A DNA stretch of 64,000 nucleotides from Bugula neritina. Lineage: Eukaryota; Animalia; Bryozoa. Under the pieces are notes generated by a model. The model had not been told where the DNA came from and ran no database searches. It worked only from the letters and a program-made list of their open reading frames with translations. Made by a program: the position numbers and the translations under genes. The DNA lies in assembly GCA_964035545.1 (NCBI GenBank), contig OZ037769.1, positions 248,001-312,000 on the forward strand. The letters are read 5' to 3'. Positions 7,329 through 27,169 of the stretch are shown here, piece after piece (the first letter of the stretch is position 1; every line of letters starts with the position of its first letter).

Positions 7329-7542
<214 letters not shown>

Positions 7543-8465
7543 AGCTGTAGTTATATGCACTACATAGAAGCATTGTGTCATAAATCATAGCAAATAAATT
7601 AGTAGCAGAATTACATAACTTTACTTGATATGCTGGAAATATGCATTAAATAAAATGTTTAGCATATTAATTGTAGAATTGATGACATAAATAAATAAAT
7701 AAACGTTATCAATGGATGAAGCAGCTAACATGGATAATGTGTGATCTTGCTATTTAGTAAAAATTTACACGTATGTAAACTGTTCTGTATTATATCTATT
7801 ATCTAGGCACTAAAGACTCTGTAAACTGTTCTGTATTATATCTATTATCTAGGCACCAAAGACTGTTGTTCTTAGATAAGGGAAGACAATTCTGAAAAAA
7901 TGCTTTTAGAAGTACAATTCTAATATTTTAAATAAGAAGTTTTGAACACAGTTGCAGCTTTGCAGTTCTAAAAAACGTAGTTTTTGAAATAACAAATCAA
8001 CATACATCATCATATTTAGTGTGAGGGAACTACAATTATTTCATGCGGGTTATGCTAGCATTTTGTTCTGCTAGTAACGTAATTGTCAAGTTGCACTTTT
8101 TCCGTTAGTAGGCTAGATCTGCCCCTGTAAATTAGAGAAATTATTTTTAGACTAATACAAACATGATGAGTTAAAAATAAATTCTCAGTCGCACATTGTC
8201 AATGGAGGAATATATTCACATATATGTTGCAATCAATTCTTTTGTTAGACACCAAGTCACCATCTAGCATTGCTGCTATAAAGTTTATTGTTTTTCAACT
8301 GTAGTCAGGAATAATAGAACTATTGATATTTACCTCGTGACTGCTACGTATATAGCTGCTAAGTGGCTTAGTAAACAATCAAGCCTATGGAGTTTAGATA
8401 TCATGTGAGTTCTACACAAGTGTTGAATAGCTTGTGCAATATTGGACCACGGTTCTTGAGAGGAC

Positions 8466-8552
8466 TATAAATACATATTGCATAGTTGCACTTGTAATAT
8501 AGGTACGCCGTAGTCTCACCTGTGTACAGAACGCTCTGGGTATATTGTCAAG
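8466..8552 (+). promoter_or_regulatory. Putative TATA box and non-coding first exon of the first CD225-WSC gene
   Basis: TATAAAT at 8466; strong donor aag|gtaagt at 8553; acceptor tatag at 8809 just upstream of the ATG at 8824. Confidence 0.35.
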
Positions 8553-8823
8553 GTAAGTTGAGTTATGTCTACTTTAATTTTACTTTTAAGTCAAAAGGAG
8601 TGACACATTTATTGAACCTGTTTGAATTTAAGTTTTGTATTCAGTATTGCATCATGATGTTAACTTATAGCTTATTATGTACCATTCCTTACTACTACTA
8701 GTAGTAGTACTAATACTACTACTACAAGTGGTGGTAGTACTGCAAGTAATGGTAGTACTGCAAGTAGTGGCAGTACTACTAGTAGTAAACACTGTAACTT
8801 GTACTATAGAAACTGCTCAGAGT

Positions 8824-11800
8824 ATGACGCTTGAACCGAAATACGAGGAGAAGACTCAATATGGAATGAATGAACCCCCACCCCCTGCATATCCAGTAGC
8901 AGTGAATGGATCCGCCCCCTCCTCTGTGTACGGCAATGTGTACTCCACTCCCGGTTCCACTCAAGCTGGTTATGCCGCACCCACCGGTTATGCCGCACCC
9001 ACCGGTTATGCTGCACCGACCGCGGCAGCGGCAGCTCCGACAGCGGCAGCTCCGACAGCGAATGGTAACAGGTCAGCCTACTACCAGAGCAAGAATGGAA
9101 CTTACTGCAACGTTGTGGTACCAGGTGACCAGCTGCAGGCAGATGGATCTCTACCCCACGTAAGTACCTTGTCTCAAGTAATACTTTGTCTCAAGTAGTA
9201 CTCTGTCTTAAGTAGTACTCTGTCTCAAGCAAGTACTCTGTCTTGAGTAAGTACTCTGTCTTAAGTAAGTACTATGTCTCAAGTAAGTACCCTGTCTCAA
9301 GTAAATACTCTGTTTCACGTAAGTACCCTGTCTCAAGCAAGTACCCTGTCTCAAGCAAGTAATCTGTCTTAATTAAGTACCCTGTCTCAAGTAAGTACCC
9401 TGTCTCAAGTAAGTACCCTGTCTCAAGTAAGTACTATGTCTCAAGTAAGTAACCTGTCTCAAGTAAGTACTCTGTCTCAAGTAAGTACTCTGTCTCAAGT
9501 AATTACTCTGTCTCAAGTAAGTACCCTGTCTCAAGTAAGTACTCTGTCTTAAGTAAGTACTCTGTCTCAAGTAAGTACTCTGTCTCAAGTAAGTACTCTG
9601 TCTCACGTAAGTACTCTGTCTTAAGTAAGTACCCTGTCTCAAGTAGTACTCTGTGTCAAGTAAGTACTCTGTCTTAAGTAAGTACTCTGTCTCAAGTAAG
9701 TACTCTGTGTCACGTAAGTACTATGTCTTAAGTAAGTACTATGTCTCAAGCAAGTACTCTGTCTCAAGTAGTGAGTCAACTGAGTCAGTTACATATAATC
9801 AGAGTGAATATTTAGTATAAAGGATCTTTGCAGGCTCCCATATTTATTACTGGGAACTGAGTGTAAGTAACATTGTACCTATATAACACTATATATTGCT
9901 GTGAAGAATATATAACACTATTATAATATATATTGTGTAAAACTACATTGGTTTTTAAGCTATTCCAGTGTCTTTTATTACTTGTGTAGGTTTTTACTGT
10001 ATAAATATTTTATTTTATTGTCTCTGGTCAGATATAACAATTGAGGTTAGAATGTGATACTAAATTAGTACTGCTCAATAGTAGCCTGTCTAATCTTCCT
10101 TTAAGGAATACTGCAAGAACAATGCTATGCAGATTCTAATGTTACAGCTGCAAAACTTGTATATACCCTCCTTATATACTCATATATGTATGTACTGTAT
10201 ATACCCTCCTTATATACTCATATATGTATGTACTGTATATACCCTCTTCATATACTCATATATGTATGTACTGTATATACCCTCCTTATATACTCATATA
10301 TGTATGTACTGTATATACCCTCTTCATATACTCATATATGTATGTACTGTATATACCCTTCTTATATACTCATATATGTATGTACTGTATATACCCTCCT
10401 TATATACTCATATATGTATGTACTGTATATACCCTCCTTATATACTCATATATGTATGTACTGTATATACCCTCCTTATATACTCATATATGTATGTACT
10501 GTATATACCCTCCTTATATACTCATATATGTATGTACTGTATATACACTCCTTATATACTCATATATGTATGTACTGTATATACCCTCCTTATATACTCA
10601 TATATGTATGTACTGTATATACCCTCCTTATATACTCATATATGTATGTACTGTATATACCCTCCTTATATACTCATATCTGTCTGTACTGTATATACCC
10701 TCCTTATATACTCATATCTGTCTGTACTGTATATACCCTCCTCATATACTCATATATGTATGTACTGTATATACCCTCCTCATATACTCATATATGTATG
10801 TACTGTATATGCCCTCAATCTAACAACACCATAAGCTATTCTATGACAATGCATGGTATCTCCAATTTAGACTATTTTGTGCTGGCTTAGCTTAGCTCTG
10901 CTATGAGCAATACAATAGACTAGTTAGGGTGTTGAGTATGTCCATCATACATGCAGCCCACTGGACTATTGAATTTGCATCAATTAATTTGAGTTGCTAT
11001 TTAAACAAGTCTTAAATAAAGCAGAGTGTGTATTCTGAATTGAAAGTTGAAACTAGTAAAACATATTACGTCATTCAACTTAGCTTACAACCAGGACAGA
11101 ATAGAACCTGCAACCAAGATACTATTGATTCTTGTATTATTCATTTCATGTTTTGTTTAACTTATTTGCTCAGAAAGTTAAATTTATACTATTTCAATAA
11201 AATGCATTTTAAGAAGTTGGGAGAAAATGGTGTCAAGATATAATGAAATTATCTAGTTATGAAAGCAAATAAGTTAGCATGATGATATTGGGCGGAATAA
11301 AGCTATTTCAGTGCTGTGTTGCAAATAGCTAAATGCAGCATCCAGCTTTTTCTGCAACGACACACTAACAGAAACTGAGACACACTGCAACTGTGACCTA
11401 TTAAAATGTGGCCCAAATATGATGAATAATTGCAGAAGTGTCACATAGCGTTCTGACACATAGTATTCTGACACATAGTATTCTGACACGTAGTATTGTG
11501 ACACATAGTATTGTGACACATTATATTCTGACACATAGTATTCTGACACATAGTATTCTGACACATAGTATTCTGACACATTGTATTCTGACACATTGTA
11601 TTCTGATACATAGTATTGTGACACATTGTATTCTGACACATAGTATTCTGACACATAGTATTCTGACACATATTATTCTGACACATAGTATTCTGACACA
11701 TAGTATTGTGACACATAGTATTCTGACACATAGTATTGTGACACGTAGTATTCTGACACATAGTATTCTGACACATAGTATTCTGACACATAGTATTCTG

Positions 11801-14800
11801 ACACATTGTATTCTGACACATTGTATTCTGACACATAGTATTCTGACACATAGTATTCTGATACATAGTATTCTGACACGTAGTATTGTGACACATATTA
11901 TTCTGACACCTAGTATTGTGACACATAGTATTGTGACACATAGTATTCTGACACATAGTATTGTGACACATAGTATTCTGACACATTGTATTGGGACACC
12001 TGGTATTTCATTGCAGACGTGTCACCATCACTCAAAGATATGGTTCTACATATCTCTCTGTGCCATCATCCTATTCTTTCCGCTGGCCATCCCCGGGGCG
12101 GTGTTCGCACACAAAGCTCGACAAGATGCTAAGAGGGGAGACAAACTCGCTTACAAGAAGCATTTGAGAATCTCTCATGTTCTCACCGGGATAGCCATCG
12201 GTTTCGGGATTTCCTCCATTGCAAATGTCACAGCAAGAGTTAGTTTTCATGAAAATCAGCAAAACATTGGCCGACATGTTTTAATAAAAGCCACACTGAG
12301 TTCAATAATTTAGTTTATTTTATTGAAAGAAGAGAATAGCATTATAAAAGTAGTATAAGTAAGTTATGTTGAGCAGTGCAACAAGTATTTTGAGTGAGCC
12401 AACAAGCAAAGCATGTTATACGATTTGGTTATTGAACACATGATGAAAATAGATTGCAACTCAATAATTCCATCTGTACAGGCTATACATATTCTATTAC
12501 TGGACGTTATCATACAAATGTTAGTCATGAAATATCCCAAGCTTTTTAATTTTAGTGGAAATTTTGATTTAGGGTGCGGGTTGAAATTCTCACGAGAACA
12601 TAACTTCTTATGCTACATTTGTAATCTAGTACAATGGCTTTTCTCAAATTCTCCATTACTGCACCTACTTCTCTACAATGCAATACAAATTTATTTATCA
12701 GACAAATAAAATATTGTAGATTCCCCAGTTTGTAAAAAAAAGTACGGTGATTTCATATGGAGGGTTAGAGAAGAGATTGGTACCGAACTGGACTAGTGAG
12801 TATAATATTAGTATAGAACTGTAAGTATAGTATAGAACTGTAAGTATAGTATACACTGTAAGTATAGTATATACTGTAAGTATAGTATATACTGTAAGTA
12901 TAGTATATACTGTAAGTATAGTATACACTGTAAGTATAGTATACACTGTAAGTATAGTATAGAACTGTAAGTATAGTATAGAACTGTAAGTATAGTATAC
13001 ACTGTAAGTATAGTATACACTGTAAGTATAGTATATACTGTAAGTATAGTATATACTGTAAGTATAGTATACACTGTAAGTATGTAGTATACACTGTAAG
13101 TATAGTATACACTGTAAGTATAGTATAGAACTGTAAGTATATTATATACTGTAAGTATAATATACACTGTGAGTATAGTATACACTGTAAGTATAGTATA
13201 TACTGTAAGTATAGTATACACTGTGAGTATAGTATACACTGTAAGTATAGTATAGAACTGTAAGTATATTATACACTGTAAGTATAGTATACACTGTAAG
13301 TATAATATACACTGTAAGTATAATATACACTGTAAGTATAGTATAGAACTGTAAGTATAATATACACTGTAAGTATAGTATACACTGTAAGTATAGTATA
13401 GAACTGTAAGTATAGTATAGAACTGTAAGTATAGTATAGAGCTATAAGTATAGTATACACTGTAAGTATAGTATACACTGTAAGTATAGTATATACTGTA
13501 AGTATAGTATAGACTGTAAGTATAGTATACACTGTAAGTATAGTACATACTGTAAGTATAGTATACACTGTAAGTATGTAGTATACACTGTAAGTATAGT
13601 ATACACTGTAAGTATAGTATAGAACTGTAAGTATATTATATACTGTAAGTATAATATACACTGTGAGTATAGTATACACTGTAAGTATAGTATATACTGT
13701 AAGTATAGTATACACTGTGAGTATAGTATACACTGTAAGTATAGTATAGAACTGTAAGTATATTATACACTGTAAGTATAGTATACACTGTAAGTATAAT
13801 ATACACTGTAAGTATAATATACACTGTAAGTATAGTATAGAACTGTAAGTATAATATACACTGTAAGTATAGTATACACTGTAAGTATAGTATAGAACTG
13901 TAAGTATAGTATAGAGCTATAAGTATAGTATACACTGTAAGTATAGTATACACTGTAAGTATAGTATATACTGTAAGTATAGTATAGACTGTGAGTATAG
14001 TATACACTGTAAGTATAGTATAGAACTGTAAGTATATTATACACTGTAAGTATAGTATACACTGTAAGTATAGTATACACTGTAAGTATAGTATACACTG
14101 TAAGTATATTATACACTGTAAGTATAGTATACACTGTAAGTATAGTATACTTACAGTGTATAGTATACACTGTGAGTATACTATACACTGTAAGTATAAT
14201 ATACACTGTAAGTATAGTATAGAACTGTAAGTATAATATACACTGTAAGTATAGTATACACTGTAAGTATAGTATACACTGTAAGTATAGTATAGAACTG
14301 TAAGTATAGTATAGAGCTATATAAGTATAGTATATTCATATAATATCAGTGTAATATATTATATGTTGCCAGCATCTGGTAGTTATATTGGCTGTTACGC
14401 TGACGACCCAGCAGATAGAGATCTGAATGGAGAAGTCATGTCTGGCCTTACAAAGGAAGAATGTCTCACCTATTGTGCGAACAAAGGTAGGGATACCATA
14501 ACCCGCTGGTTTATGTCTTGTGTCTCAACAGAACAGCTGGAGTTATTCTTCCTCTGGTTTATTCTATATAATGCTGTTGATAACCACTATTCCAACTTCC
14601 AGGATACAAGTATGCAGGGCTACAAAGTGAAACAGACTGCTACTGTGGACAAGAGTTTGATAAACACGGTAAACTTGACGACTCAGACTGCGACTACGAG
14701 TGCCCTTCTGACCCAGACTTCTCTTGTGGAGGAAGTTTCAAGAACTCAGTCTACAGAACTCACTACCTAGGTAGAGTAGCAGTATACTGTACTAATACCT

Positions 14801-17800
14801 AGGTAGAGTAGCAGTATACTGTACTAGTACCTAGGTAGAGTAACAGTATACTATACTAATACCTAGGTAAAGTAGCAGTATACTATACTAATACCTAGGT
14901 AGAGTAGCAGTATACTGTACTAATACCTAGGTAAAGTAGCAGTATACTATACTAATACCTAGGTGAAGTAGCAGTATACTATACTAATACCTAGGTAGAG
15001 TAGCAGTATACTGTACTAATACCTAGGTATTAGTACAGTATACTATACTAATACCTAGGTGAAGTAGCAGTATACTGTACTAATACCTAGGTAGAGTAGC
15101 AGTATACTGTACTAATACCTAGGTAAAGTAGCAGTATACTGTACTAATACCTAGGTAGAGTAACAGTATACTATACTAATACCTAGGTAAAGTAGCAGTA
15201 TACTGTACTAATACCTAGGTAGAGTAACAGTATACTATACTAATACCTAGGTAGAGTAGCAGTATACTGTACTAATACCTAGGTAAAGTAGCAGTATACT
15301 GTACTAGTACCTAGGTAGAGTAACAGTATACTATACTAATACCTAGGTGAAGTAGCGGTATACTATACTAATACCTAGGTAGAGTAACAGTATACTATAC
15401 TAATACCTAGGTGAAGTAGCAGTATACTATACTAATACCTAGGTAGAGTAGCAGTATACTGTACTAATACCTAGGTATTAGTACAGTATACTATACTAAT
15501 ACCTAGGTGAAGTAGCAGTATACTGTACTAATACCTAGGTAGAGTAGCAGTATACTGTACTAATACCTAGGTAAAGTAGCAGTATACTGTACTAATACCT
15601 AGGTAGAGTAACAGTATACTATACTAATACCTAGGTAGAGTAGCAGTATACTGTACTAATACCTAGGTAAAGTAGCAGTATACTGTACTAATACCTAGGT
15701 AGAGTAACAGTATACTATACTAATACCTAGGTAAAGTAGCAGTATACTGTACTAATACCTAGGTAAAGTAGCAGTATACTGTACTAATACCTAGGTAGAG
15801 TAGCAGTATACTATACTAATACCTAGGTAAAGTAGCAGTATACTGTACTAATACCTAGGTAGAGTAGCAGTATACTGTACTAATACCTAGGTAAAGTAGC
15901 AGTATACTGTACTAATACCTAGGTAAAATAGCAGTATACTGTACTAACTACCTAGGTAAAGTAACTGCACACTATTAGGCAAAATATTACAGCTCTTTTT
16001 TAGAGTTGCCTTTCCTCTCTCTAGTATTTTTACTTGGTCCTAGTAATTAACTCGTCTTTATCCAAGAGTGCTGCCTTATGCAGGATGTTATGACGACTAC
16101 AATGGAGATGCTGTCGACCAGTTCAGCTACATCATGCCCTCTAGTAACGCTACTCAAGATACGTGTATATCCAGGTGTATGCAGGAAGGTATGTTCTAAC
16201 CAACATCCACGTGTATATCCAGGTGTATGCAAGAAGGTATGTTCTAACCAACATCTACCTGTATATCCAGGTGTATGCAGGAAGGTATGTTCTAAGAAAC
16301 ATCTACCTGTATATCCAGGTGTAGGCTGAAAATCTACTAGTCTCGCTGCTTACATAATTTCTTTGCAGTTAAAAAACAATTTTCAACACTAAGTGCAAAA
16401 CAAGTATGAATAATATATTCATCAATACATGTGAGGTAGCTTTAGTGACTGTGCGCTGCTAATGAATAACACCAACCACTCTGCTGTCAGGTTATGAGTT
16501 TGCTGCCATCAAAAATGGAGAAGAATGCCAGTGTAGCAACGATCCTAACAGAGATGGTGAAGCAGATATCGGCTCCTGTAACGTCGCTTGTGAAGGGAAC
16601 GCCGACTTTCTGTGTGGAGGGAAATTCAAGAACTCGGTCTATAAAACTGATTATAACAGTGAGTCGTGCTTTAGACATGCATATGTGTAATAGAATATGA
16701 TATAATATGACATTCTATAATAAAATATAATATAATATGAAACAACATGCATTGTTTTCCTAGACATAGAAATAATAGACAACTACCTTGGTTGCTATGA
16801 CGACGATGTGAATGATAGAGACATGGATGAACACTACTTTGATATTGATGGCATCGATGATTCTGAGAAATGTGTTGAAGCTTGTGGGCACTTGGGTACG
16901 TCTTAGTACACTTTCATTATACATTCTGTTGCAATGTAAGTTACAAGTTACAAGTTACAAGTAATATACTGTGTAGGATACAAGTAATATACTGTGTAGG
17001 TTACAAGTAATATACTGTGTAGGATACAAGTAATATACTGTGTAGGTTACAAGTAATATACTGTGTAGGATACAAGTAATATACTGTGTAGGATACAAGT
17101 AATATACTGTGTAGGTTACAAGTAATATACTGTGTAGGTTACAAGTAATATACTGTGTAGGATACAAGTAATATACTGTGTAGGTTACAAGTAATATACT
17201 GTGTAGGATACAAGTAATATACTGTGTAGGTTACAAGTAATATACTGTGTAGGATACAAGTAATATACTGTGTAGGATACAAGTAATATACTGTGTAGGT
17301 TACAAGTAATATACTGTGTAGGTTACAAGTAATATACTGTGTAGGTTACAAGTAATATACTGTGTAGGTTACAAGTAATATACTGTGTAGGTTACAAGTA
17401 ATATACTGTGTAAGTTACAAGTAATATACTGTGTAAGTTACAAGTAATATACTGTGTAGGATGCAAGTAATATTCTGTGTAAGATACAAGTAATATTCTG
17501 TGTAAGTTACAAGTAATATACTGTGTAGGTTACAAGTAATATACTGTGTAGGATACAAGTAATATACTGTGTAAGATACAAGTAATATACTGTGTAGGAT
17601 ACAAGTAATATACTGTGTAAGTTACAAGTAATATACTAAGTAAGTTACAAGTAATATACTGTGTAGGATACAAGTAATATACTGTGTAGGTTACAAGTAA
17701 TATACTGTGTAGGATACAAGTAATATACTGTGTAGGTTACAAGTAATATACTGTGTAAGTTACAAGTAATATACTGTGTAGGTTACAAGTAATATACTGA

Positions 17801-19683
17801 GTAAGATACAAGTAATATTCTGTGTAAGTTACAAGTAATATTCTGTGTAAGTTACAAGTAATATACTGTGTAAGTTACAAGTAATATACTGTGTAAGTTA
17901 CAAGTAATATACTAAGTAAGTTACAAGTAATATACTGTGTAGGATACAAGTAATATACTGTGTAAGATACAAGTAATATACTGTGTAAGTTACAAGTAAT
18001 ATACTGTGTAAGTTACAAGTAATATACTGTGTAGGATACAAGTAATATACTGTGTAGGTTACAAGTAATATACTGTGTAGGATACAAGTAATATACTGTG
18101 TAGGTTACAAGTAATATATTGTGTAGGATACAAGTAATATACTGTGTAAGTTACAAGTAATATACTGTGTAGGATACAAGTAATATACTGTGTAGGTTAC
18201 AAGTAATATACTGTGTAGGATACAAGTAATATATTGTGTAAGTTACAAGTAATATACTGTGTAGGATACAAGTAATATACTGTGTAGGTTACAAGTAATA
18301 TACTGTGTAGGATACAAGTAATATATTGTGTAAGTTACAAGTAATATACTGTGTAGGTTACAAGTAATATACTGTGTAAGTTACAAGTAATATACTGTGT
18401 AGGTTACAAGTAATATACTGTGTAAGTTACAAGTAATATACTGTGTAAGTTACAAGTAATATACTGTGTAAGTTACAAGTAATATACTGTGTAAGTTACA
18501 AGTAATATACTGTGTAGGATACAAGTAATATACTGTGTAGGTTACAAGTAATATACTGTGTAGGATACAAGTAATATACTGTGTAGGTTACAAGTAATAT
18601 ACTGTGTAGGATACAAGTAATATACTGTGTAGGATACAAGTATGCTGGTGTCCAATTCGGAGAGACATGTTTCTGTGGCAATGAATACGGAAAGCACGGG
18701 GAACTTGCTAAGAGTGGGTGTAAGGATGAATGCACCGCAAACTGTGCTGGAGATGAGGCTAATTACATTTACAGAACTCGCTATATTGGTAGGATGTCAA
18801 CTAAACAATATAATATGTAACATAATTTTATGTTATATATCGCAGTATAATATGTAACATAATTATATATAACATATTATATATTGTATTATAATATATT
18901 GCATACTAATGTACCTCATGATATATTAATATATAATATCTCATCTATTACTGTATTATATGATATAATATTATTTTAAATCAGATTCTATATTAAAAAA
19001 TTGTACTATATATTGTTATATAAAATTACATAATATATTGTTATACTACATTCTATTATATATTGTTATATTATATTATATTATATTATATTATATTATA
19101 TTATATTATATTATATTATATTATATTATATTATATTATATTATATTATATTATATTATATTATATTATATTATATTATATTATATTATATTATATTATA
19201 TTATATTATGTCAGGCTGCTTCCCAGACAAAGAGCAAAGAGCTATGAGTCATGAAATAGACATTGACTCTGACCAGAATGAACCAGCCACTTGCATAGAG
19301 CTGTGTGAAGCCGCAGGTGAGAGGTCAAACTTCTAGTATATTACAACTACATGACTTTGTCCATGCTCTTACATAGACAGCTGCATCTATACTACAACTG
19401 TTACAACTATAACCTTTCTCACTTGGACAGCTGCATCTATACTGCAACTGCTACTTCGCCAATCTCAGTATTGCTACATGCTGATGCAACAATAAATTCT
19501 CTTACAGGTTACCAGTTTGCTGGCGTAGAGGACGGCGACCAGTGTTACTGCGGTAACAACCCCAACAGGTACGAGCAGGTGTCTGAAGACGAGTGTAACA
19601 GGCAGTGTTCTGGCAGCACTAAGCACACCTGTGGCGGCTCCTGGAGAATCTCCATATTCAAGACACAAGCAGATTACGATTAA
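8824..19683 (+). CDS. CD225/dispanin-like membrane protein fused to four WSC domains (paralog 1, ~584 aa)
   Basis: Exons 8824-9159, 12017-12238, 12720-12795, 14373-14486, 14603-14770, 16084-16188, 16491-16658, 16764-16895, 18633-18788, 19215-19316, 19508-19683; total 1755 nt, phases consistent. N-terminus is Pro/Tyr/Ala-rich (EPPPPAYP, GYAAPT x3). CD225-like segment WFYISLCAIILFFPLAIPGAVFAHKARQDAKRGD. Four WSC motifs of the form Y(I/L)GC(Y/F)xD...C...C...GYxYAGL...C(Y/F)CG...C...C...CGG...S(V/I)Y. Confidence 0.8.
9160..9770. repeat. 18-bp minisatellite (gtaagtactctgtctcaa) starting exactly at a splice donor
   Basis: About 34 copies; the first copy begins with the GTAAGT donor of exon 8824-9159. 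Confidence 0.95.
10158..10810. repeat. 38-bp minisatellite (tgtatataccctccttatatactcatatatgtatgtac)
   Basis: About 17 near-identical tandem copies; intronic. Confidence 0.95.
11450..11995. repeat. 15-bp minisatellite (ttctgacacatagta)
   Basis: About 36 copies ending just before the acceptor at 12016. Confidence 0.95.
12810..14335. repeat. 18-bp minisatellite (actgtaagtatagtatac); every unit carries GTAAGT or GTGAGT
   Basis: About 85 copies filling the intron 12796-14372. Confidence 0.95.
14764..15960. repeat. 32-bp minisatellite (tacctaggtagagtagcagtatactgtactaa) spanning an exon/intron junction
   Basis: About 37 copies; the unit contains the last exonic bases TACCTAG and the GT donor. Confidence 0.95.
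16161..16322. repeat. 48-bp repeat (~3.4 copies) spanning a splice donor
   Basis: Unit acgtgtatatccaggtgtatgcaggaag|gtatgttctaaccaacatcc; the first copy is partly coding. Confidence 0.9.
16955..18642. repeat. 23-bp minisatellite (tacaagtaatatactgtgtagga) whose last copy provides the splice acceptor
   Basis: About 73 copies; the final copy gtgtag|GATACAAGTAT starts exon 18633. Confidence 0.95.
19040..19209. repeat. (TATAT/ATTAT)n microsatellite
   Basis: Pentanucleotide run directly upstream of the acceptor at 19214. Confidence 0.9.
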
Positions 19684-20686
19684 AGTGCCATAATGTTAGC
19701 TAGAGAAATAGATCAATATTAATTGTATATTCTTATTGTTTTCAAATCTGTGTTTGTTTTCTTTTCTACTTGGACTTTACTTGTAAATTACCTGAAATTT
19801 TAACTTTTTTATTCATGACTTGCTGTATTTGAATATTTTTCGTGCATCATCATTTTACCAGGTGGCAATAATGTTTATCTGGTGGCAGTAATATTTACCA
19901 GGTGGCAGTAATGTTTACCAGGTAATAATGATGGCTGATGCCTATTTTAATTTTGTTTGTGCAGAGCTATGCTGTGATAAAATGAATCATTGAAAGCAAT
20001 TTTAATGCTTCTGTTTTTCAATATTTTTTCTCAAAGTTAATGTATTTTTTAGTGAATTTTAGTAGCAGAAAATAAATTTTTTAATCTATTTTTGTAAATA
20101 AAGGTGTGATGATGTGGAAATTCAGCTTCAAAAATTAGCTTCCAAAAGAGGGTTCAAGTGTTTAGCTGTGAAGTCTTGTACAAATGATTAAAAGCCACGT
20201 TGTTTTAAAGCTTAATGTAAAGTTAATACCTTGAAGGTTGTAAACATTTAGCATAAGAAAGGTGAACGACTAGAAGTGCGTTGACACTGTCAATACAGGA
20301 AAGTGCTGGAGATCAATAGAGACTCAAGAGTTTGTTGCATGTAATCAAACTGATTAGTTATTGATTCACTGAAACAAGTAATTCTCTATTTATATGCTCT
20401 TCAAGTTCAACAACTGCTGCCGAATAAGTTTTAGTCTTTCTATATTTCAGAGCAAACAATTCATGCGTTGTTTGTTTCAAATACAGCCATAGAAAACCTT
20501 GTTCTAAATGAATCTGACATAATTAAAAATACAGACTCTACCTGGACACTGTATTATGTCTATACAGTTGAGGAAGGCAGGTTTTAGCATGCAGCTGCTA
20601 TGAAACAGAGACTGTGATAGCACCAATACCTGAGATATATTTTCAAGGGGCTCAACTTTGCTGTCTGTTGCTTCCTAAAGAGGACC

Positions 20687-23600
20687 ATGGACAAGAATGA
20701 GTACACTGGGGACTCTGCTCCAGCACCGGTGAAGGCACTGGATCCATTATATGGCAGCAGGGTGCTGGTCACAGAGGCAGCGGGAGAAGAGAACCTGTAT
20801 GCAGATCCACCTGCACCAGTTCAGGCAGAGGTTGTGTCTGCTGACTCCCCACAGCTACCACGAGTTCCTGGTGATCCTGTGAACTCTTACTGTGGCCCTG
20901 ACCCACCCACCCCAGTCTTAGCAGAGAGTCTCAGCACAACTTACCAAGTTTCACAGTCTACTTCAGCCCCAACCCAGTTCTCTGTCACAGAAGGAGGTGT
21001 TACAGTTCAACAGGTTAAGTGCTATTAAATTAGTCCTTCTATAGTTTGTAATGATAGTGCTATAGTTAGTAATGATAGTGCTATAGTTAGTAATGATAGT
21101 GCTATCGCTTGTAATGATAGTGCTATAGTTAGTAATGATAGTGCTATAGTTAGTAATGATAGTGCTATAGTTAGTAATGGTAGTGCTATAGTTAGTAATG
21201 ATAGTGCTATAGTTTGTAATGATAGTGCTACAGATAGTAATGATAGTGCTATAGTCAGTATTGATAGCGCTATAATTAGTAATGATAGTGCTATAGTTTG
21301 TAATGATAGCGCTATAATTAGTAATGATAGTGCTATAGTTTGTAATGGTAGCGCTATAGTTAGTAATGATAGTGCTATAGTTAGTAATGATAGTGCTACA
21401 GTTAGTAATGATAGTGCTATAGTTAGTAATGATAGTGCTATAGTTAGTAATGATAGTGCTATAGTTAGTAATGATAGTGCTATAGTTAGTAATGATAGTG
21501 CTATAGTTTGTAATGATAGTGCTATAGTTAGTAATGATAGTGCTATAGTTAGTAATGATAGTGCTATAGTTAGTAATGATAGTGCTACAGTTAGTAATGA
21601 TAGTGCTATAGTTAGTAATGATAGTGCTATAGTTTGTAATGATAGTGCTATAGTTAGTAATGATAGTGCTATAGTTAGTAATGATAGTGCTATAGTTTGT
21701 AATGATAGTGCTATAGTTAGTAATGATAGTGCTATAGTTAGTAATGATAGTGCTATAGTTTGTAATGATAGTGCTATAGTTAGTAATGATAGTGCTATAG
21801 TTAGTAATGGTAGTGCTATAGTTTGTAATGGTAGTGCTATGCTATAGTTAGTAATGATAATTTAACAACATCAACTGGGATTTTACCATTTGTTGATAAG
21901 TTCGTATATTGACAACAAAACCGCTAATCAGTTTGTGATTGTTTAGAAAATATATTCCTAACAGTAACTAGCAGGTACTTGTGAGAGAGAGTAACTATGC
22001 AGGTACTTATGCTGTGTCCCTCAACCATCAGCACATATATGCACAAGCTCCAACTTGCCTATTCTACATAAATGAATTGTTTTTTACTTCTAGTTTTACG
22101 AAGACTTGATAGAAAAACATTAAATAGAAATGTATGTCTTGCAGTAGGTGTAGCGTTTTGATGGAACTATTTAACCTATTCAATTTTCCCACTGCTGCCT
22201 AGGTCAGCGCTGCCGCATCTGTTTGCTGGCTGGTAATCAGCATCTTCTCAGCAATCCTTTGCTGCCTGCCTCTCGGTGTTGCCGGAGCAGTTCTGTCGTG
22301 TGTCGCCATTACAGACGCCAAGAGGCAAAACAAGGAAACATATCAAGCAAGGCTCTGTCAAGCTAGAATAGTAACAGGAGTTGGGATTGGTCTCGGTTTG
22401 GTTGGACTGGTAGCAGGTCTTCTCTCCGGTGTATGTAGACTTGAGTAGTTGTGTAGAGTGTATGTAGACTTGAGTAGTTGTGCTGAGTGTATGTAGACTT
22501 GAGTAGTTGTGTTGAGTGTATGTAGACTTGAGTAGTTGTGTAGAGTGTATGTAGACTTGAGTAGTTGTGCTGAGTGTATGTAGACTTGAGTAGTTGTGTT
22601 GAGTGTATGTAGACTTGAGTAGTTGTGTAGAGTGTATGTAGACTTGAGTAGTTGTGTAGAGTGTATGTAGACTTGAGTAGTTGTGCTGAGTGTATGTAGA
22701 CTTGAGTAGTTGTGTAGAGTGTATGTAGACTTGAGTAGTTGTGTAGAGTGTATGTAGACTTGAGTAGTTGTGTAGAGTGTATGTAGACTTGAGTAGTTGT
22801 GCTGAGTGTATGTAGACTTGAGTAGTTGTGTAGAGTGTATGTAGACTTGAGTAGTTGTGTAGAGTGTATGTAGACTTGAGTAGTTGTGCTGAGTGTATGT
22901 AGACTTGAGTAGTTGTGTAGAGTGTATGTAGACTTGAGTAGTTGTGTAGAGTGTATGTAGACTTGAGTAGTTGTGCTGAGTGTATGTAGACTTGAGTAGT
23001 TGTGTAGAGTGTATGTAGACTCGAGTAGTTGTGCTGAGTGTATGTAGACTTGAGTAGTTGTGTTGAGTGTATGTAGACTTGAGTAGTTGTGCTGAGTGTA
23101 TGTAGACTTGAGTAGTTGTGCTGAGTGTATGTAGACTTGAGTAGTTGTGTTGAGTGTATGTAGACTTGAGTAGTTGTGCTGAGTGTATGTAGACTTGAGT
23201 AGTTGTGCTGAGTGTATGTAGACTTGAGTAGTTGTGCTAAGTGTATGTAGACTTGAGTAGTTGTGTAGAGTGTATGTAGACTCGAGTAGTTGTGCTGAGT
23301 GTATGTAGACTTGAGTAGTTGTGTAGAGTGTATGTAGACTCGAGTAGTTGTGCTGAGTGTATGTAGACTTGAGTAGTTGTGCTGAGTGTATGTAGACTTG
23401 AGTAGTTGTGCTGAGTGTATGTAGACTTGAGTAGTTGTGCTGAGTGTATGTAGACTTGAGTAGTTGTGCTGAGTGTATGTAGACTTGAGTAGTTGTGCTG
23501 AGTGTATGTAGACTTGAGTAGTTGTGCTGAGTGTATGTAGACTCAAGTAGTTGTGTAGAGTGTATTCCTGTGTGTTCTGAGCTCTACCTGACCCGTATAC

Positions 23601-26600
23601 TCTCAAAGAAATATTCACCATGCTATACAGACTCCTAGAAGTATGAATGTTATAATTCTATTTACCATTTTACAGCTATTACTGACATTTTCCTCGAGAC
23701 GATATGATGAACCCCTGGTATTTGACTCTGGAGTCACCATAAACCAACCATGGGATGGTAACAAAACCCATATAATGATTATTTGCTTCTTTGTGCATGC
23801 TTACTTTGCTAAATACATTATTTGAATTCTACAATACGTAGCAGTTGGAGGTAAATAGATTCTACAATAGTTAGCAGTTACAGGTGAATGCACATCCGTT
23901 CTTTTAGATCAGGGGGTGTATTTGGGATGTTTTCAAGATGTTGATGGCTCTGTGCAACTTGATGGGATAAAGTATAACTTTGGGTGGTCAAACGGAGCCC
24001 AGAAGTGTGTGGAGTTCTGCGCAATGCAAAGTAAGAGGAAAGTTATACAGCCCCACACCACTTAATCCAAGTTCTAACTGCTACCAGTTTACTAAAGAGC
24101 ATTAGCACAATATGGTGGGAAGCTAAGTTGCAGTTTATTACAAAAAGAAAGTTGATTTCTCATTTGTATATTGTAAATTACAAGCTGTACATCTACAAAA
24201 CCTTACTAGACCCTTTGTAGAAGAGATTATTCAACCTCTTTCTTTAAACTTGGTAACAGTGTGCAAGCATTGCTTCACAGGAGGAGGCAATTTCTACAAT
24301 ACGCACAACATTGTGGTAAAACATAATAAACAATACCGTAGTTATCCCCACTAAATAATAAACGATATTGTCGCTATGACCATAGTTGTAGAATATGATG
24401 CTCTATAATAGATATGTAGGCGTAAGATTATGCTGATCTATAAAGGTGATTGGTGTACAAGAAAGTATTATATTACTGCATGTGTGTAATATTGGAATAG
24501 TATGTAAATATATTCTTTTACAGGTTTCAAGTACGCAGGCCTTCAAGGAGGGGACATGTGTCACTGCAGTAACTACTACAATTCTACAACCAGACTTGAA
24601 GAGTCCAGCTGCGATGTTTATTGCCAGAATACTCGGGAAATCTGTGGAGGGTATTCAGAGAGTTCTATTTATAGAACTAACTTCTTAGGTGTGTACGATA
24701 CTGGCTCTCCTGCATACTCATACTGCATCCAATAGGTTTGTTGTTATAGCGTTGTGTACTGTTATGTAGGCTGTTTCCATGACGATTTTCCAGACATGTC
24801 TTTGGGTGAGTTCTCTGCAGAGGTTGAAAGTCACCAGGAATGTATAACAATGTGTGGAAACTACGGTAAGTCTATGTAATGTAATATGTACTGCTAACTT
24901 GATCACATGACTTAGACTGGGATCATCATCATAGACTGAGATCAACATAACTAGCCAGTCACAACTTATATGCTGCTATGTGGTATGACATGTACATGGT
25001 ATAATATATGAGATTATAGCATGATAGTTGTGCAGACAATTCCTCTACGCAATCTACCAAAGTATCCCACAAGTGGACCTGACAAATATAAATAAAAATA
25101 AAATAAGATATAAACGCCATTATATCATAGCTAACTATTTATATACCTTTCAATTTGCATTATCAACTATATTATCTATTCCGTAGCATAAAGTTATTGT
25201 GTAACTGGGAGAATAAAATACTAGCAGTAGTTGGTGGTCTATTACAGCTTATGACTTTGCCGGCCTTCAGAACTCTAGTACGTGTTACTGCGGGTACGAC
25301 CCCAACCGATACGGTGAAGCAAACTTAGCTGAGTGCAACATTCCCTGTGAATACAACTCCAGTTTGACATGTGGTGGGCTGCTTAAGAACACGGTCTATA
25401 AAACACATTTCCTCTGTGAGTATAAGACACATTTCCTCTGTGAGTATAAGACACATTTACTCTGTGAGTATAAGACACATTTACTCTGTGAGTATAAGAT
25501 ACATTTACTCTGTGAGTATAAGACACATTTACTCTGTGAGTATAAGATACATTTACTCTGTGAGTATAAGACACATTTACTCTGTGAGTATAAGATACAT
25601 TTACTCTGTGAGTATAAGGATGTAGTCTCTAAGACACATTTACTCTGTTAAGATTTAGGAGGTTGCATATTTTAGATCACTCCACCTACTACTACCTTGG
25701 TTGTTTCCTGGACAGACCTGATTTCCCTGATCTCAACTCCTTCACCTACACTCTTCAGCAAACTGATGACCACCACGCATGTGTTTCTATCTGCGCTCAC
25801 AGGGGTTCAACTTTACTTACATAACAGCTGCGTTCAAATCATTGAAAATGTTGAAGTCGAAACTTTTAATTGAAATATTACACCTTCTACTAATTTGGAG
25901 AAGATACATTAAGGTTTTACACATAGCTCAGTGTTATAAAACTATCTCGTTAGATTCTTACTGTGACTTAGTTTGTCTGGGTGATTACCTGCAGGTTTCA
26001 GGTATGCTGGGCTACAGAATGGAACTGAGTGTTTTTGCTCACAGACGTATGGTAGATATGGTAAGATGGGGGAGACAGAGTGTTACACAACTTGCCCAGC
26101 ATCTGATGCAATCTGTGGAGGAATTAATAGAAACACTGTTTACAGAACATTCTACCTGGGTGAGTAGCCAATGAGCATCATTCTACCTAGGTGAGTAGCC
26201 AATGAGCATCATTCTACCTAGGTGAGTAGCCAATGAGCATCATTCTACTGCCATATTTGACCATGAGTCTCTCTTGCATTAGCCAACCATGACTATTGGG
26301 TTTCATAGCTTATTGAGGTATTTGTAAACAACCTCTAATAGTTTATTGCGTGTGTCATCACCGAGGAGGTTGTGTCAACAGCAATCTGATGTTTATAGGA
26401 TGCTTTGAGGACGATGCATATGACAGAGCACTGAATGAAAGCATAGACTTAGCTATTAGCTATTTTGACTTTGAACCTGCGATGTGCATCACTACCTGTG
26501 AAGTAAAAGGTAAACACTATAGTGTATATTATATTTATATATTAATGTTTATGAGTCAATGCTGTTCTCATTTATACCAAATCTAGTATGTAGCAGAGCC

Positions 26601-27169
26601 TCTTCTGCTAGAACTGAAATAAGCAGACAAAGCATATGAGCAGAATTCTCGAGCCCTACCAAACATTTAAGAGTTCATATATGTGTAAGCTCTAAGCACG
26701 AGAGACAAGTTATTGCTGTTATCAAACAAAGAGTTTTTTATTGAAAACTGATAAAGAACTTGCTTGAAGTGGGCCTGTTATTATAAATTGCCAATCTACT
26801 TAGTAATGAATACTCTAACTGAATAAAAACCAAGCTAAATAGTAAATATACTGCAGTTTATACCAGAAAATATTATGTAAACATAATCTGCACTCCACAA
26901 CTGTTAGGGTAAAAACTATTGCAAAATAATCATAGCAAACAAGCTGATTGACAGTTGATGGAGCGAGTATTAATAGTGACTGGGTGTTACCAGGTTACTT
27001 GTTTGCTGGAGTACAAAATGGTAATGAATGTTACTGTGGGCACGACTTCAACAAGTACCAGCAAGCACCTGACAACCACTGTGACATTTTATGTGATGGC
27101 AGCTCTGGACAAGTGTGTGGTGGGCACCTACGGAACTCTCTGTACAAGACTTCCCTTCTAGACTTCTAA
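20687..27169 (+). CDS. CD225/dispanin-like membrane protein fused to four WSC domains (paralog 2, ~589 aa)
   Basis: Exons 20687-21013, 22203-22430, 23676-23757, 23908-24030, 24524-24688, 24770-24865, 25248-25415, 25676-25804, 25995-26159, 26399-26509, 26994-27169; total 1770 nt. Canonical CD225 core WLVISIFSAILCCLPLGVAGAVLS...DAKRQ...ARIVTGVGIGLGLVGLVAGLLSG|LLLTF, then four WSC domains. Exon number and phases match paralog 1. The donor at 25805 (gttcaa) is weak. Confidence 0.82.
21041..21860. repeat. 21-bp minisatellite (tagttagtaatgatagtgcta)
   Basis: About 39 copies in intron 1 of paralog 2. Confidence 0.95.
22429..23562. repeat. 29-bp minisatellite (gtatgtagacttgagtagttgtgtagagt) starting at a splice donor
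   Basis: About 39 copies; the first copy begins with the GTATGT donor of the CD225 exon. Confidence 0.95.
25397..25618. repeat. 24-bp repeat (tataagacacatttactct|gtgag) spanning a splice donor
   Basis: Nine GTGAGT donor copies at 24-nt spacing, 25416 to 25608. Confidence 0.9.
26148..26247. repeat. 31-bp repeat (~3 copies) spanning a splice donor
   Basis: cattctacct(g/a)g|gtgagtagccaatgagcat repeated three times. Confidence 0.9.

Follow-up and report, generated by a model that had tools for sequence, protein, structure and literature searches.

Can an anchor of the CD225 (dispanin) type carry a large extracellular part built from WSC domains in one and the same polypeptide? Known dispanins are small and exert their effects from inside the membrane, and the question is raised by two neighboring genes, here called gene 1 and gene 2, on the forward strand of chromosome 5 (C5) of the bryozoan Bugula neritina (GenBank assembly GCA_964035545.1, contig OZ037769.1, positions 248,001 to 312,000). 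This stretch of 64,000 nucleotides (nt) is referred to as the window, and coordinates given without a prefix are counted from its first base. In each gene, a Pro/Tyr-rich exon and a CD225 exon lie ahead of eight exons that encode halves of WSC domains, and an initial sequence-only reading had put forward a receptor with a cytoplasmic N-terminus, a CD225 anchor, and four WSC domains outside the cell. Our results suggest that each gene probably encodes one membrane glycoprotein of ~580-590 amino acids (aa). For the critical junction, exon structure and comparative data indicate that the CD225 exon is very likely spliced to the WSC exons in gene 1, and, with slightly less assurance, that this is likely the case in gene 2 as well. 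The proposed receptor thereby stands as a prediction with comparative support from three directions, namely, a sister lineage, the pattern across a gene family, and an existing model of a paralog (A0A7J7JVQ3).

The gene models were obtained by enumerating all combinations of GT donors and AG acceptors that preserve an open frame around each coding block, which yielded one consistent 11-exon path per gene, with GT-AG at all junctions (Table 1). In both genes, the Pro/Tyr-rich exon comes first and the CD225 exon second; a short linker then leads over to the eight WSC half-exons, with phase 0 at the exon 1/CD225 and CD225/linker junctions and phase 1 at all later junctions. The summed exons amount to 1740 nt (579 aa) in gene 1, for which a start codon at 8866 is a possible alternative to the one at 8824, and to 1770 nt (589 aa) in gene 2, both of which are divisible by three. 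The identical layout and phases first noticed in the two genes were thus recovered as the one consistent path in each, and the short phase-0/phase-1 linker between the CD225 and WSC exons is present in both. A hydropathy scan placed the only hydrophobic segments of both genes in the CD225 exons and detected neither a signal peptide nor a hydrophobic segment in exon 1 of either gene. The second helix of gene 2, which had been read as running across the CD225/linker junction (GLLSG in the one exon and LLLTF in the next), was found to do so, and it is conserved in the second lineage described below, as is the PPxY motif of gene 1.

The identity of the domains was assessed by scoring exons singly against Pfam, using the gathering scores of PF01822 (WSC; 27.8 bits) and PF04505 (CD225; 27.1 bits) as cut-offs. 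All eight WSC second-half exons exceed the PF01822 cut-off on their own (29.6-47.3 bits), which bears out the WSC assignment of the sequence-only reading, while four of the eight first halves weakly match PF01822 positions 1-36 (15.6-17.7 bits). Every half-pair in both genes carries 3+5 cysteines, or eight per domain, and all of these are kept in the second lineage. For the anchor, the genome (216,009,554 bases) contains at least 24 similar exons, and we built an alignment (A1) of 21 anchors, comprising 15 genomic CD225 exons and six database relatives. All 21 match PF04505 at E <= 0.01 (best 2e-13), and the A1 profile matches the CD225 domain of human PRRT1 (PDB 9zks, residues 223-288) with an E value of 3.8e-5. 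The local hidden Markov models (HMMs) used here and below were built from exons in this analysis, so the scores of seed exons are self-inclusive; this applies to the E value of 1.6e-29 obtained for the CD225 exon of gene 1, which is among the seeds. Further, the A1 alignment and the hydropathy scan display the CD225 hallmark layout in both genes, with two hydrophobic segments flanking a basic loop. Within the first segment, gene 2 keeps the Cys-Cys/Pro-x-Gly motif (CCLPLG), and the corresponding residues of gene 1 are FFPLA. An AlphaFold prediction for the gene 2 anchor exon with the family alignment returned two long helices at low confidence (pLDDT 66). As calculated from both gene models, the proteins would continue for ~390 residues after the second helix.

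Much of the evidence on whether these exons belong together comes from a second lineage, represented by two JGI metagenome contigs (L040 and L041; samples 3300003318 and 3300002729) that were reached through a word search with the gene 1 anchor. Of the two, L040 is the longer; it aligns colinearly with window positions ~7450 to 26500 and covers all of gene 1 and gene 2 minus its last exon. Synonymous divergence between window and contigs across the membrane and WSC exons is 0.24-0.29, on which basis we consider the contigs to derive from a distinct lineage of the B. neritina species complex. At all junctions covered by the contigs (every junction except the last acceptor of gene 2), the AG and GT dinucleotides are kept in this lineage. 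Exon indels are restricted to 39, 15, and 6 nt, all multiples of three. Specifically, they consist of a total of 39 nt in exon 1 of gene 1, a 15-nt in-frame insertion in the JGI linker of gene 1, and 6 nt in exon 1 of gene 2, with the gene 2 linker having no indel and retaining both its AG and its GT. The alignable introns, which are ~89% identical on average, have accumulated 70 indel events over 2245 nt, 14 of which are multiples of three. The CD225 exons and the WSC exons each have a ratio of nonsynonymous to synonymous divergence (dN/dS) of 0.16, while the linkers reach 0.29 and exon 1 reaches 0.36 (dS 0.15-0.29). The CD225 exon alone shows 11 synonymous and 6 nonsynonymous changes in gene 1 and 12.5 and 6.5, respectively, in gene 2, and synonymous changes in the linkers exceed the neutral expectation (p = 0.023). 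Purifying selection and splice-site conservation are thus both observed in the second lineage.

The association of CD225 anchors with WSC exons also extends beyond the two genes. Mapping with local HMMs located 12 CD225 exons at C5:3.68-3.83 Mb, 11 of which have WSC exons behind them on the same strand. Together with genes 1 and 2 and a gene upstream of the window, 14 of the 15 anchors on chromosome 5 precede WSC exons, the distance being 0.3 kb in the upstream gene and ~1-2.3 kb in the others. A cluster of small stand-alone dispanins on C4, in turn, has no WSC exons nearby. In the anchor tree, the WSC-linked anchors, including those of genes 1 and 2, are set apart from the stand-alone dispanins (support 96/100), with the upstream gene unplaced on a very long branch. 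The same tree does not sustain the view of genes 1 and 2 as a recent tandem pair: their anchors are 32% identical in A1 (38% over the locally matched part), and gene 1 clusters with a gene at 3760048, in the 3.7 Mb cluster, and not with gene 2, a grouping that argues against a recent duplication of one from the other. Judged by their anchor sequences, genes 1 and 2 are diverged members of a predicted family with at least 15 genes on chromosome 5.

The linker, too, appears to be a property of this family. We recognized it in eight paralogs, where it has a hydrophobic start and is often acidic and tyrosine-rich. A conserved Trp lies one residue before the phase-1 donor in six of the eight paralogs, with a Cys at this place in two further paralogs, and the linker-like frames readable in five other paralogs contain no ATG. 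Moreover, in stand-alone family members, too, a splice directly behind the second helix leads into a tail exon, as seen when protein P0016 was mapped onto its locus (L012), suggesting that the family has long possessed this donor at the CD225 exon's end.

One such join is already present in a public protein model. UniProt entry A0A7J7JVQ3 (P0004 in our searches; named 'KREMEN1' in GenBank by automatic annotation) has a CD225 match of 37.5 bits joined to a linker and a WSC match of 48.2 bits. It stems from the 2020 B. neritina draft genome (GCA_010799875.2), in which genes were predicted using AUGUSTUS with transcriptome hints (PMC7576161), and its locus corresponds to the paralog at C5:3687839 in the Darwin Tree of Life assembly, which comprises 216.00 Mb (PMC11480708). 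The protein is ~92% identical between the two assemblies, and its linker contains an in-frame 3-nt indel between them. A0A7J7JVQ3 resembles genes 1 and 2 in its CD225-linker-WSC order and its intron positions but differs in having a short N-terminus and in ending at 189 aa, inside the first WSC domain. Its anchor is 36% identical to that of gene 2 in A1 (40% by phmmer with the gene 2 exon).

Other searches returned little. An exhaustive protein search with the gene 2 CD225 exon gave 36 matches, none above 47% identity and no ortholog model among them; three long matches (P0001, P0012, and P0028) that were considered as dispanin fusions were rejected as Calx-beta or low-complexity proteins. In word searches, the gene 1 anchor matched only a genomic open reading frame from the JGI metagenomes, the last WSC exon of gene 1 matched nothing, and A0A7J7JVQ3 matched only itself, while a look-up in the ESM Atlas gave no usable match. 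Our literature search found no paper combining CD225 and WSC domains, nor a relevant one on bryozoan WSC domains. The architecture had initially been thought undescribed, which is the case for the papers searched but not for UniProt, where it is known already from this one uncharacterized, automatic entry.

Several observations weigh against a single spliced product and need to be set beside this evidence. First, scored alone, the CD225 exons reach 18.9 bits in gene 1 and 25.5 bits in gene 2, such that the PF04505 matches expected from the sequence-only reading exist in both genes but remain under the cut-off of 27.1; the gene 1 anchor is also atypical, having lost the double cysteine and having a weakly hydrophobic second helix. 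Second, no database protein spanning the CD225/WSC junction of genes 1 and 2 was found, and the sole match to the gene 2 stretch queried against public sequencing runs (run X1) consisted of DNA contigs without splice joints, with no RNA record. Third, the family pattern could, in principle, stem from the copying of an adjacent gene pair. Finally, an in-frame ATG at 23643 of gene 2 lies 33 nt before the linker acceptor and is followed by a signal-peptide-like hydrophobic run, and the JGI gene 2 has an in-frame ATG and the same hydrophobic run two codons (six bases) further downstream. The claim that no signal-peptide exon precedes the WSC exons consequently holds insofar as there is no separate exon of this kind, but it has to be qualified for gene 2. 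In both lineages, reading through the gene 2 donor meets a stop five codons later, and a small intron-retaining isoform of this gene is possible.

The ATG at 23643, its JGI equivalent in frame with the linker, and the early read-through stop of gene 2 are what one would look for if each locus consisted of two genes, with a stand-alone dispanin ending by read-through and a secreted four-WSC protein starting in or near the linker, and small stand-alone dispanins do exist in the B. neritina genome, in the C4 cluster. We nevertheless regard this arrangement as improbable on several grounds. In gene 1, the linker frame has a stop codon directly upstream and no ATG in either lineage, and this linker exon therefore cannot start translation. 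In the JGI lineage, only 141 nt separate the CD225 exon from the linker in gene 2, and only 193 nt do so in gene 1, versus 1245 and 481 nt in the window, where the longer gaps reflect swelling by intron minisatellites; a gap of ~150 nt would leave no room for the 3' end of one gene together with the promoter and 5' end of the next. The stretch from the gene 2 ATG to the acceptor differs between the lineages by two indels, each of which shifts the frame and offsets the other, and contains, in the JGI lineage, a stop after the first ATG, indicating that it behaves as a polypyrimidine tract and not as coding sequence. A start at 23643 would encode a secreted, WSC-only protein, or this ATG could be a chance product of the polypyrimidine tract. 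In addition, the tail that reading through would add in gene 1 lacks conservation, its length and sequence diverging after ~14 residues, whereas the linker is conserved as coding sequence.

It is likewise doubtful that both forms are made, that is, mainly the fused receptor and, in addition, a small dispanin and/or a secreted WSC protein from gene 2 through intron retention or an internal start. Such a mixture would accommodate the gene 2 ATG with its hydrophobic run and the five-codon read-through, and might account for why the gene 2 intron separating CD225 exon and linker starts with 26 nt that do not differ between the lineages, against the ~89% intron average, although this identity could also be due to chance or a splicing signal, and the queried gene 2 stretch had no RNA record. 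It is very improbable that the two loci are copies in decay or artefacts of gene prediction and make no protein, given that, against the missing RNA record for the queried stretch and the atypical gene 1 anchor, both frames are intact in two lineages with all cysteines kept, dN/dS is 0.16 with no frame-breaking indels, and a second haplotype in run X1 differs mostly by synonymous changes.

If the CD225 and WSC exons are indeed joined, then the following layout would be expected. The Pro/Tyr-rich N-terminus would be cytoplasmic, with a conserved PPxY motif in gene 1, and the CD225/dispanin module would be the only membrane anchor, made up of the first hydrophobic segment, the basic loop, and a transmembrane helix. 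A short juxtamembrane linker would follow the anchor, and the four WSC domains, each with eight cysteines and N-glycosylation sites, would be displayed outside the cell or in the endosome lumen. Being rich in disulphides and carrying N-glycosylation sites, the WSC domains must face outward or toward the lumen, as these are oxidising compartments. For IFITM3, a topology with the N-terminus inside and the C-terminus outside is established, and from it we infer a comparable, type-II-like orientation for genes 1 and 2. The family as a whole probably originated from one fusion, in which phase-1 exon shuffling appended two-exon WSC modules to a dispanin gene's tail.

The possible roles of such proteins can be hypothesized from those of their parts. 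The products of genes 1 and 2 could act as multivalent receptors that bind a glycan or a protein, either at the cell surface or along the endocytic pathway; in them, the dispanin anchor would bring about clustering and the PPxY motif would direct sorting via NEDD4-type ligases, as in IFITM3. We offer this putative function tentatively and would place it at somewhat less than an even chance. The WSC domains of fungi bind beta-glucan, xylan, and chitin, while that of KREMEN1 binds a protein, DKK1; because the KREMEN1 WSC contacts a protein ligand, a glycan ligand is not a given in the bryozoan case. Among glycans, those of microbes and of the animal's own body wall, which is chitinous in bryozoans, would be reasonable candidates. 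A more far-reaching scenario is that dispanin-WSC proteins act as pattern-recognition restriction factors, the WSC domains binding glycans of microbes or symbionts and the anchor blocking fusion or routing the uptake to lysosomes. B. neritina harbors the bryostatin-producing symbiont "Candidatus Endobugula sertula", and, to our knowledge, recognition coupled to an IFITM-type effector in one polypeptide is not known in vertebrates. We consider this scenario quite improbable.

The relationship to known systems is one of partial likeness in each case. The CD225/dispanin family includes IFITM1-3, 5, and 10, PRRT1/SynDIG4, PRRT2, SynDIG1, TRARG1, and TMEM233. With these, genes 1 and 2 share the two hydrophobic segments around a basic loop and a Pro-rich N-terminus, as well as, in gene 2, the CC-(L)P-(L)G motif. 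The N-termini of IFITM3 and gene 1 both contain a PPxY motif, which in IFITM3 reads PPNY and mediates sorting through NEDD4. Known dispanins, however, stop a few residues past the second helix, a short end that the Pfam definition does not require, whereas the predicted products of genes 1 and 2 continue with their four WSC domains. The fungal Wsc1-3 sensors are similar in that a membrane anchor presents an extracellular WSC domain and is continued in the cytoplasm by a tail for signalling or sorting, such that an analogy in the sensing of a polysaccharide matrix is possible. They differ in being type I proteins, which have a signal peptide, just one WSC domain, a stalk rich in Ser and Thr, and a conventional transmembrane helix; genes 1 and 2 would have no signal peptide, four WSC domains, a dispanin anchor, and the opposite orientation. 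KREMEN1/2 and polycystin-1 also carry a WSC domain in the ectodomain of an animal membrane receptor, but it is one domain beside a kringle and a CUB domain or among many others, the proteins are type I or polytopic, and they lack CD225.

If this architecture is real, then CD225 modules are able to function as general type-II anchors for large lectin-like ectodomains, and the family would supply natural chimeras for dissecting what CD225 contributes to clustering, sorting, and membrane remodelling. For the biology of bryozoans, it would provide candidate receptors for microbes, the symbiont, or the chitinous body wall. Beyond the existing paralog model, genes 1 and 2 add diverged members with long Pro/Tyr-rich tails, one of them with a conserved PPxY motif, as well as a sister-lineage comparison that backs the join.

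Table 1. Predicted exons of genes 1 and 2 and the minisatellites in their introns (window coordinates; local HMM scores are of seed exons and self-inclusive)
Feature	Position	Strand	Remarks
Gene 1 exon 1	8824..9159	+	Pro/Tyr/Ala-rich N-terminus; PPxY (PPPPAY); donor GTAAGT
Gene 1 CD225/dispanin exon	12017..12238	+	two hydrophobic segments around basic loop; PF04505 18.9 bits
Gene 1 linker exon	12720..12795	+	phase 0 in, phase 1 out; ends in conserved NWT
Gene 1 WSC1 first half	14373..14486	+	PF01822 positions 1-36, 16.8 bits; 3 Cys
Gene 1 WSC1 second half	14603..14770	+	PF01822 41.9 bits; 5 Cys
Gene 1 WSC2 first half	16084..16188	+	local first-half HMM 51.2 bits; no Pfam match; 3 Cys
Gene 1 WSC2 second half	16491..16658	+	PF01822 35.7 bits
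Gene 1 WSC3 first half	16779..16895	+	PF01822 positions 1-35, 17.7 bits; acceptor alternatives 16764 or 16770, phase unchanged
Gene 1 WSC3 second half	18633..18788	+	PF01822 31.9 bits
Gene 1 WSC4 first half	19215..19316	+	PF01822 15.6 bits
Gene 1 WSC4 second half and TAA stop	19508..19683	+	PF01822 29.6 bits; stop kept in JGI lineage
Gene 2 exon 1	20687..21013	+	Pro-rich N-terminus, read as cytoplasmic
Gene 2 CD225/dispanin exon	22203..22430	+	CC-LPLG motif; PF04505 25.5 bits
Gene 2 linker exon	23676..23757	+	finishes second helix (LLLTF); ends QPWD, phase 1
Gene 2 WSC1 first half	23908..24030	+	PF01822 16.6 bits; alternative in-frame acceptor 23884
Gene 2 WSC1 second half	24524..24688	+	PF01822 32.2 bits
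Gene 2 WSC2 first half	24770..24865	+	local HMM 55.1 bits; no Pfam match; 3 Cys
Gene 2 WSC2 second half	25248..25415	+	PF01822 33.4 bits
Gene 2 WSC3 first half	25676..25804	+	local HMM 59.7 bits; weak donor GTTCAA, kept in JGI lineage
Gene 2 WSC3 second half	25995..26159	+	PF01822 33.4 bits
Gene 2 WSC4 first half	26399..26509	+	local HMM 44.1 bits; no Pfam match
Gene 2 WSC4 second half and TAA stop	26994..27169	+	PF01822 47.3 bits
Intron minisatellites, both genes	9160-9770, 12809-14334, 14764-15963, 16954-18642, 21039-21840, 22429-23565, 25397-25618		

The gene upstream of the window (C5:229192-243529, minus strand; loci L021 and L022) lies close to it and points away from gene 1. It has ~11 WSC domains after a very divergent CD225-like exon (local HMM E value 3.3e-4; PF04505 E <= 0.01). 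WSC exons are hugely expanded genome-wide, with at least 146 matches, nearly all of which are above the Pfam cut-off. Most of these exons occur in dense tandem arrays without a nearby CD225 exon, for example, at C4:23.06-23.08, C3:15.15-15.90, and C8:5.81-5.89 Mb.

Run X1 contains a second haplotype over 24531-24645, in the second half of the gene 2 WSC1 domain, that differs from the window at 7 of 115 nt (5 synonymous and 2 nonsynonymous differences), while the other X1 contigs listed over 23656-25396 show no differences from the window. At least five of the seven variants equal the JGI-lineage sequence, which points to shared polymorphism or gene conversion.

Most of the long introns in both genes are each filled by their own minisatellite, beginning right at the 5' splice site or no more than a few bases from it. 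Their counterparts in the JGI lineage are much shorter, as with the 141 nt found there against 1245 nt in the window. In the array at 14764, the repeat unit copies the exon end plus the donor. The 26 nt with which the CD225-to-linker intron of gene 2 begins (22431-22456), identical between the lineages, form a unit that is amplified 39 times in the window. Elsewhere in the window, at 44645-46173, there is an array of 102 copies of a 15-nt unit (CCAACCACAGCAGGG) that are 99% identical; its GC content is high (53%), its AT skew is strong, and several of its frames are open, and it could be either an intron minisatellite or a Pro/Thr-rich repeat exon.

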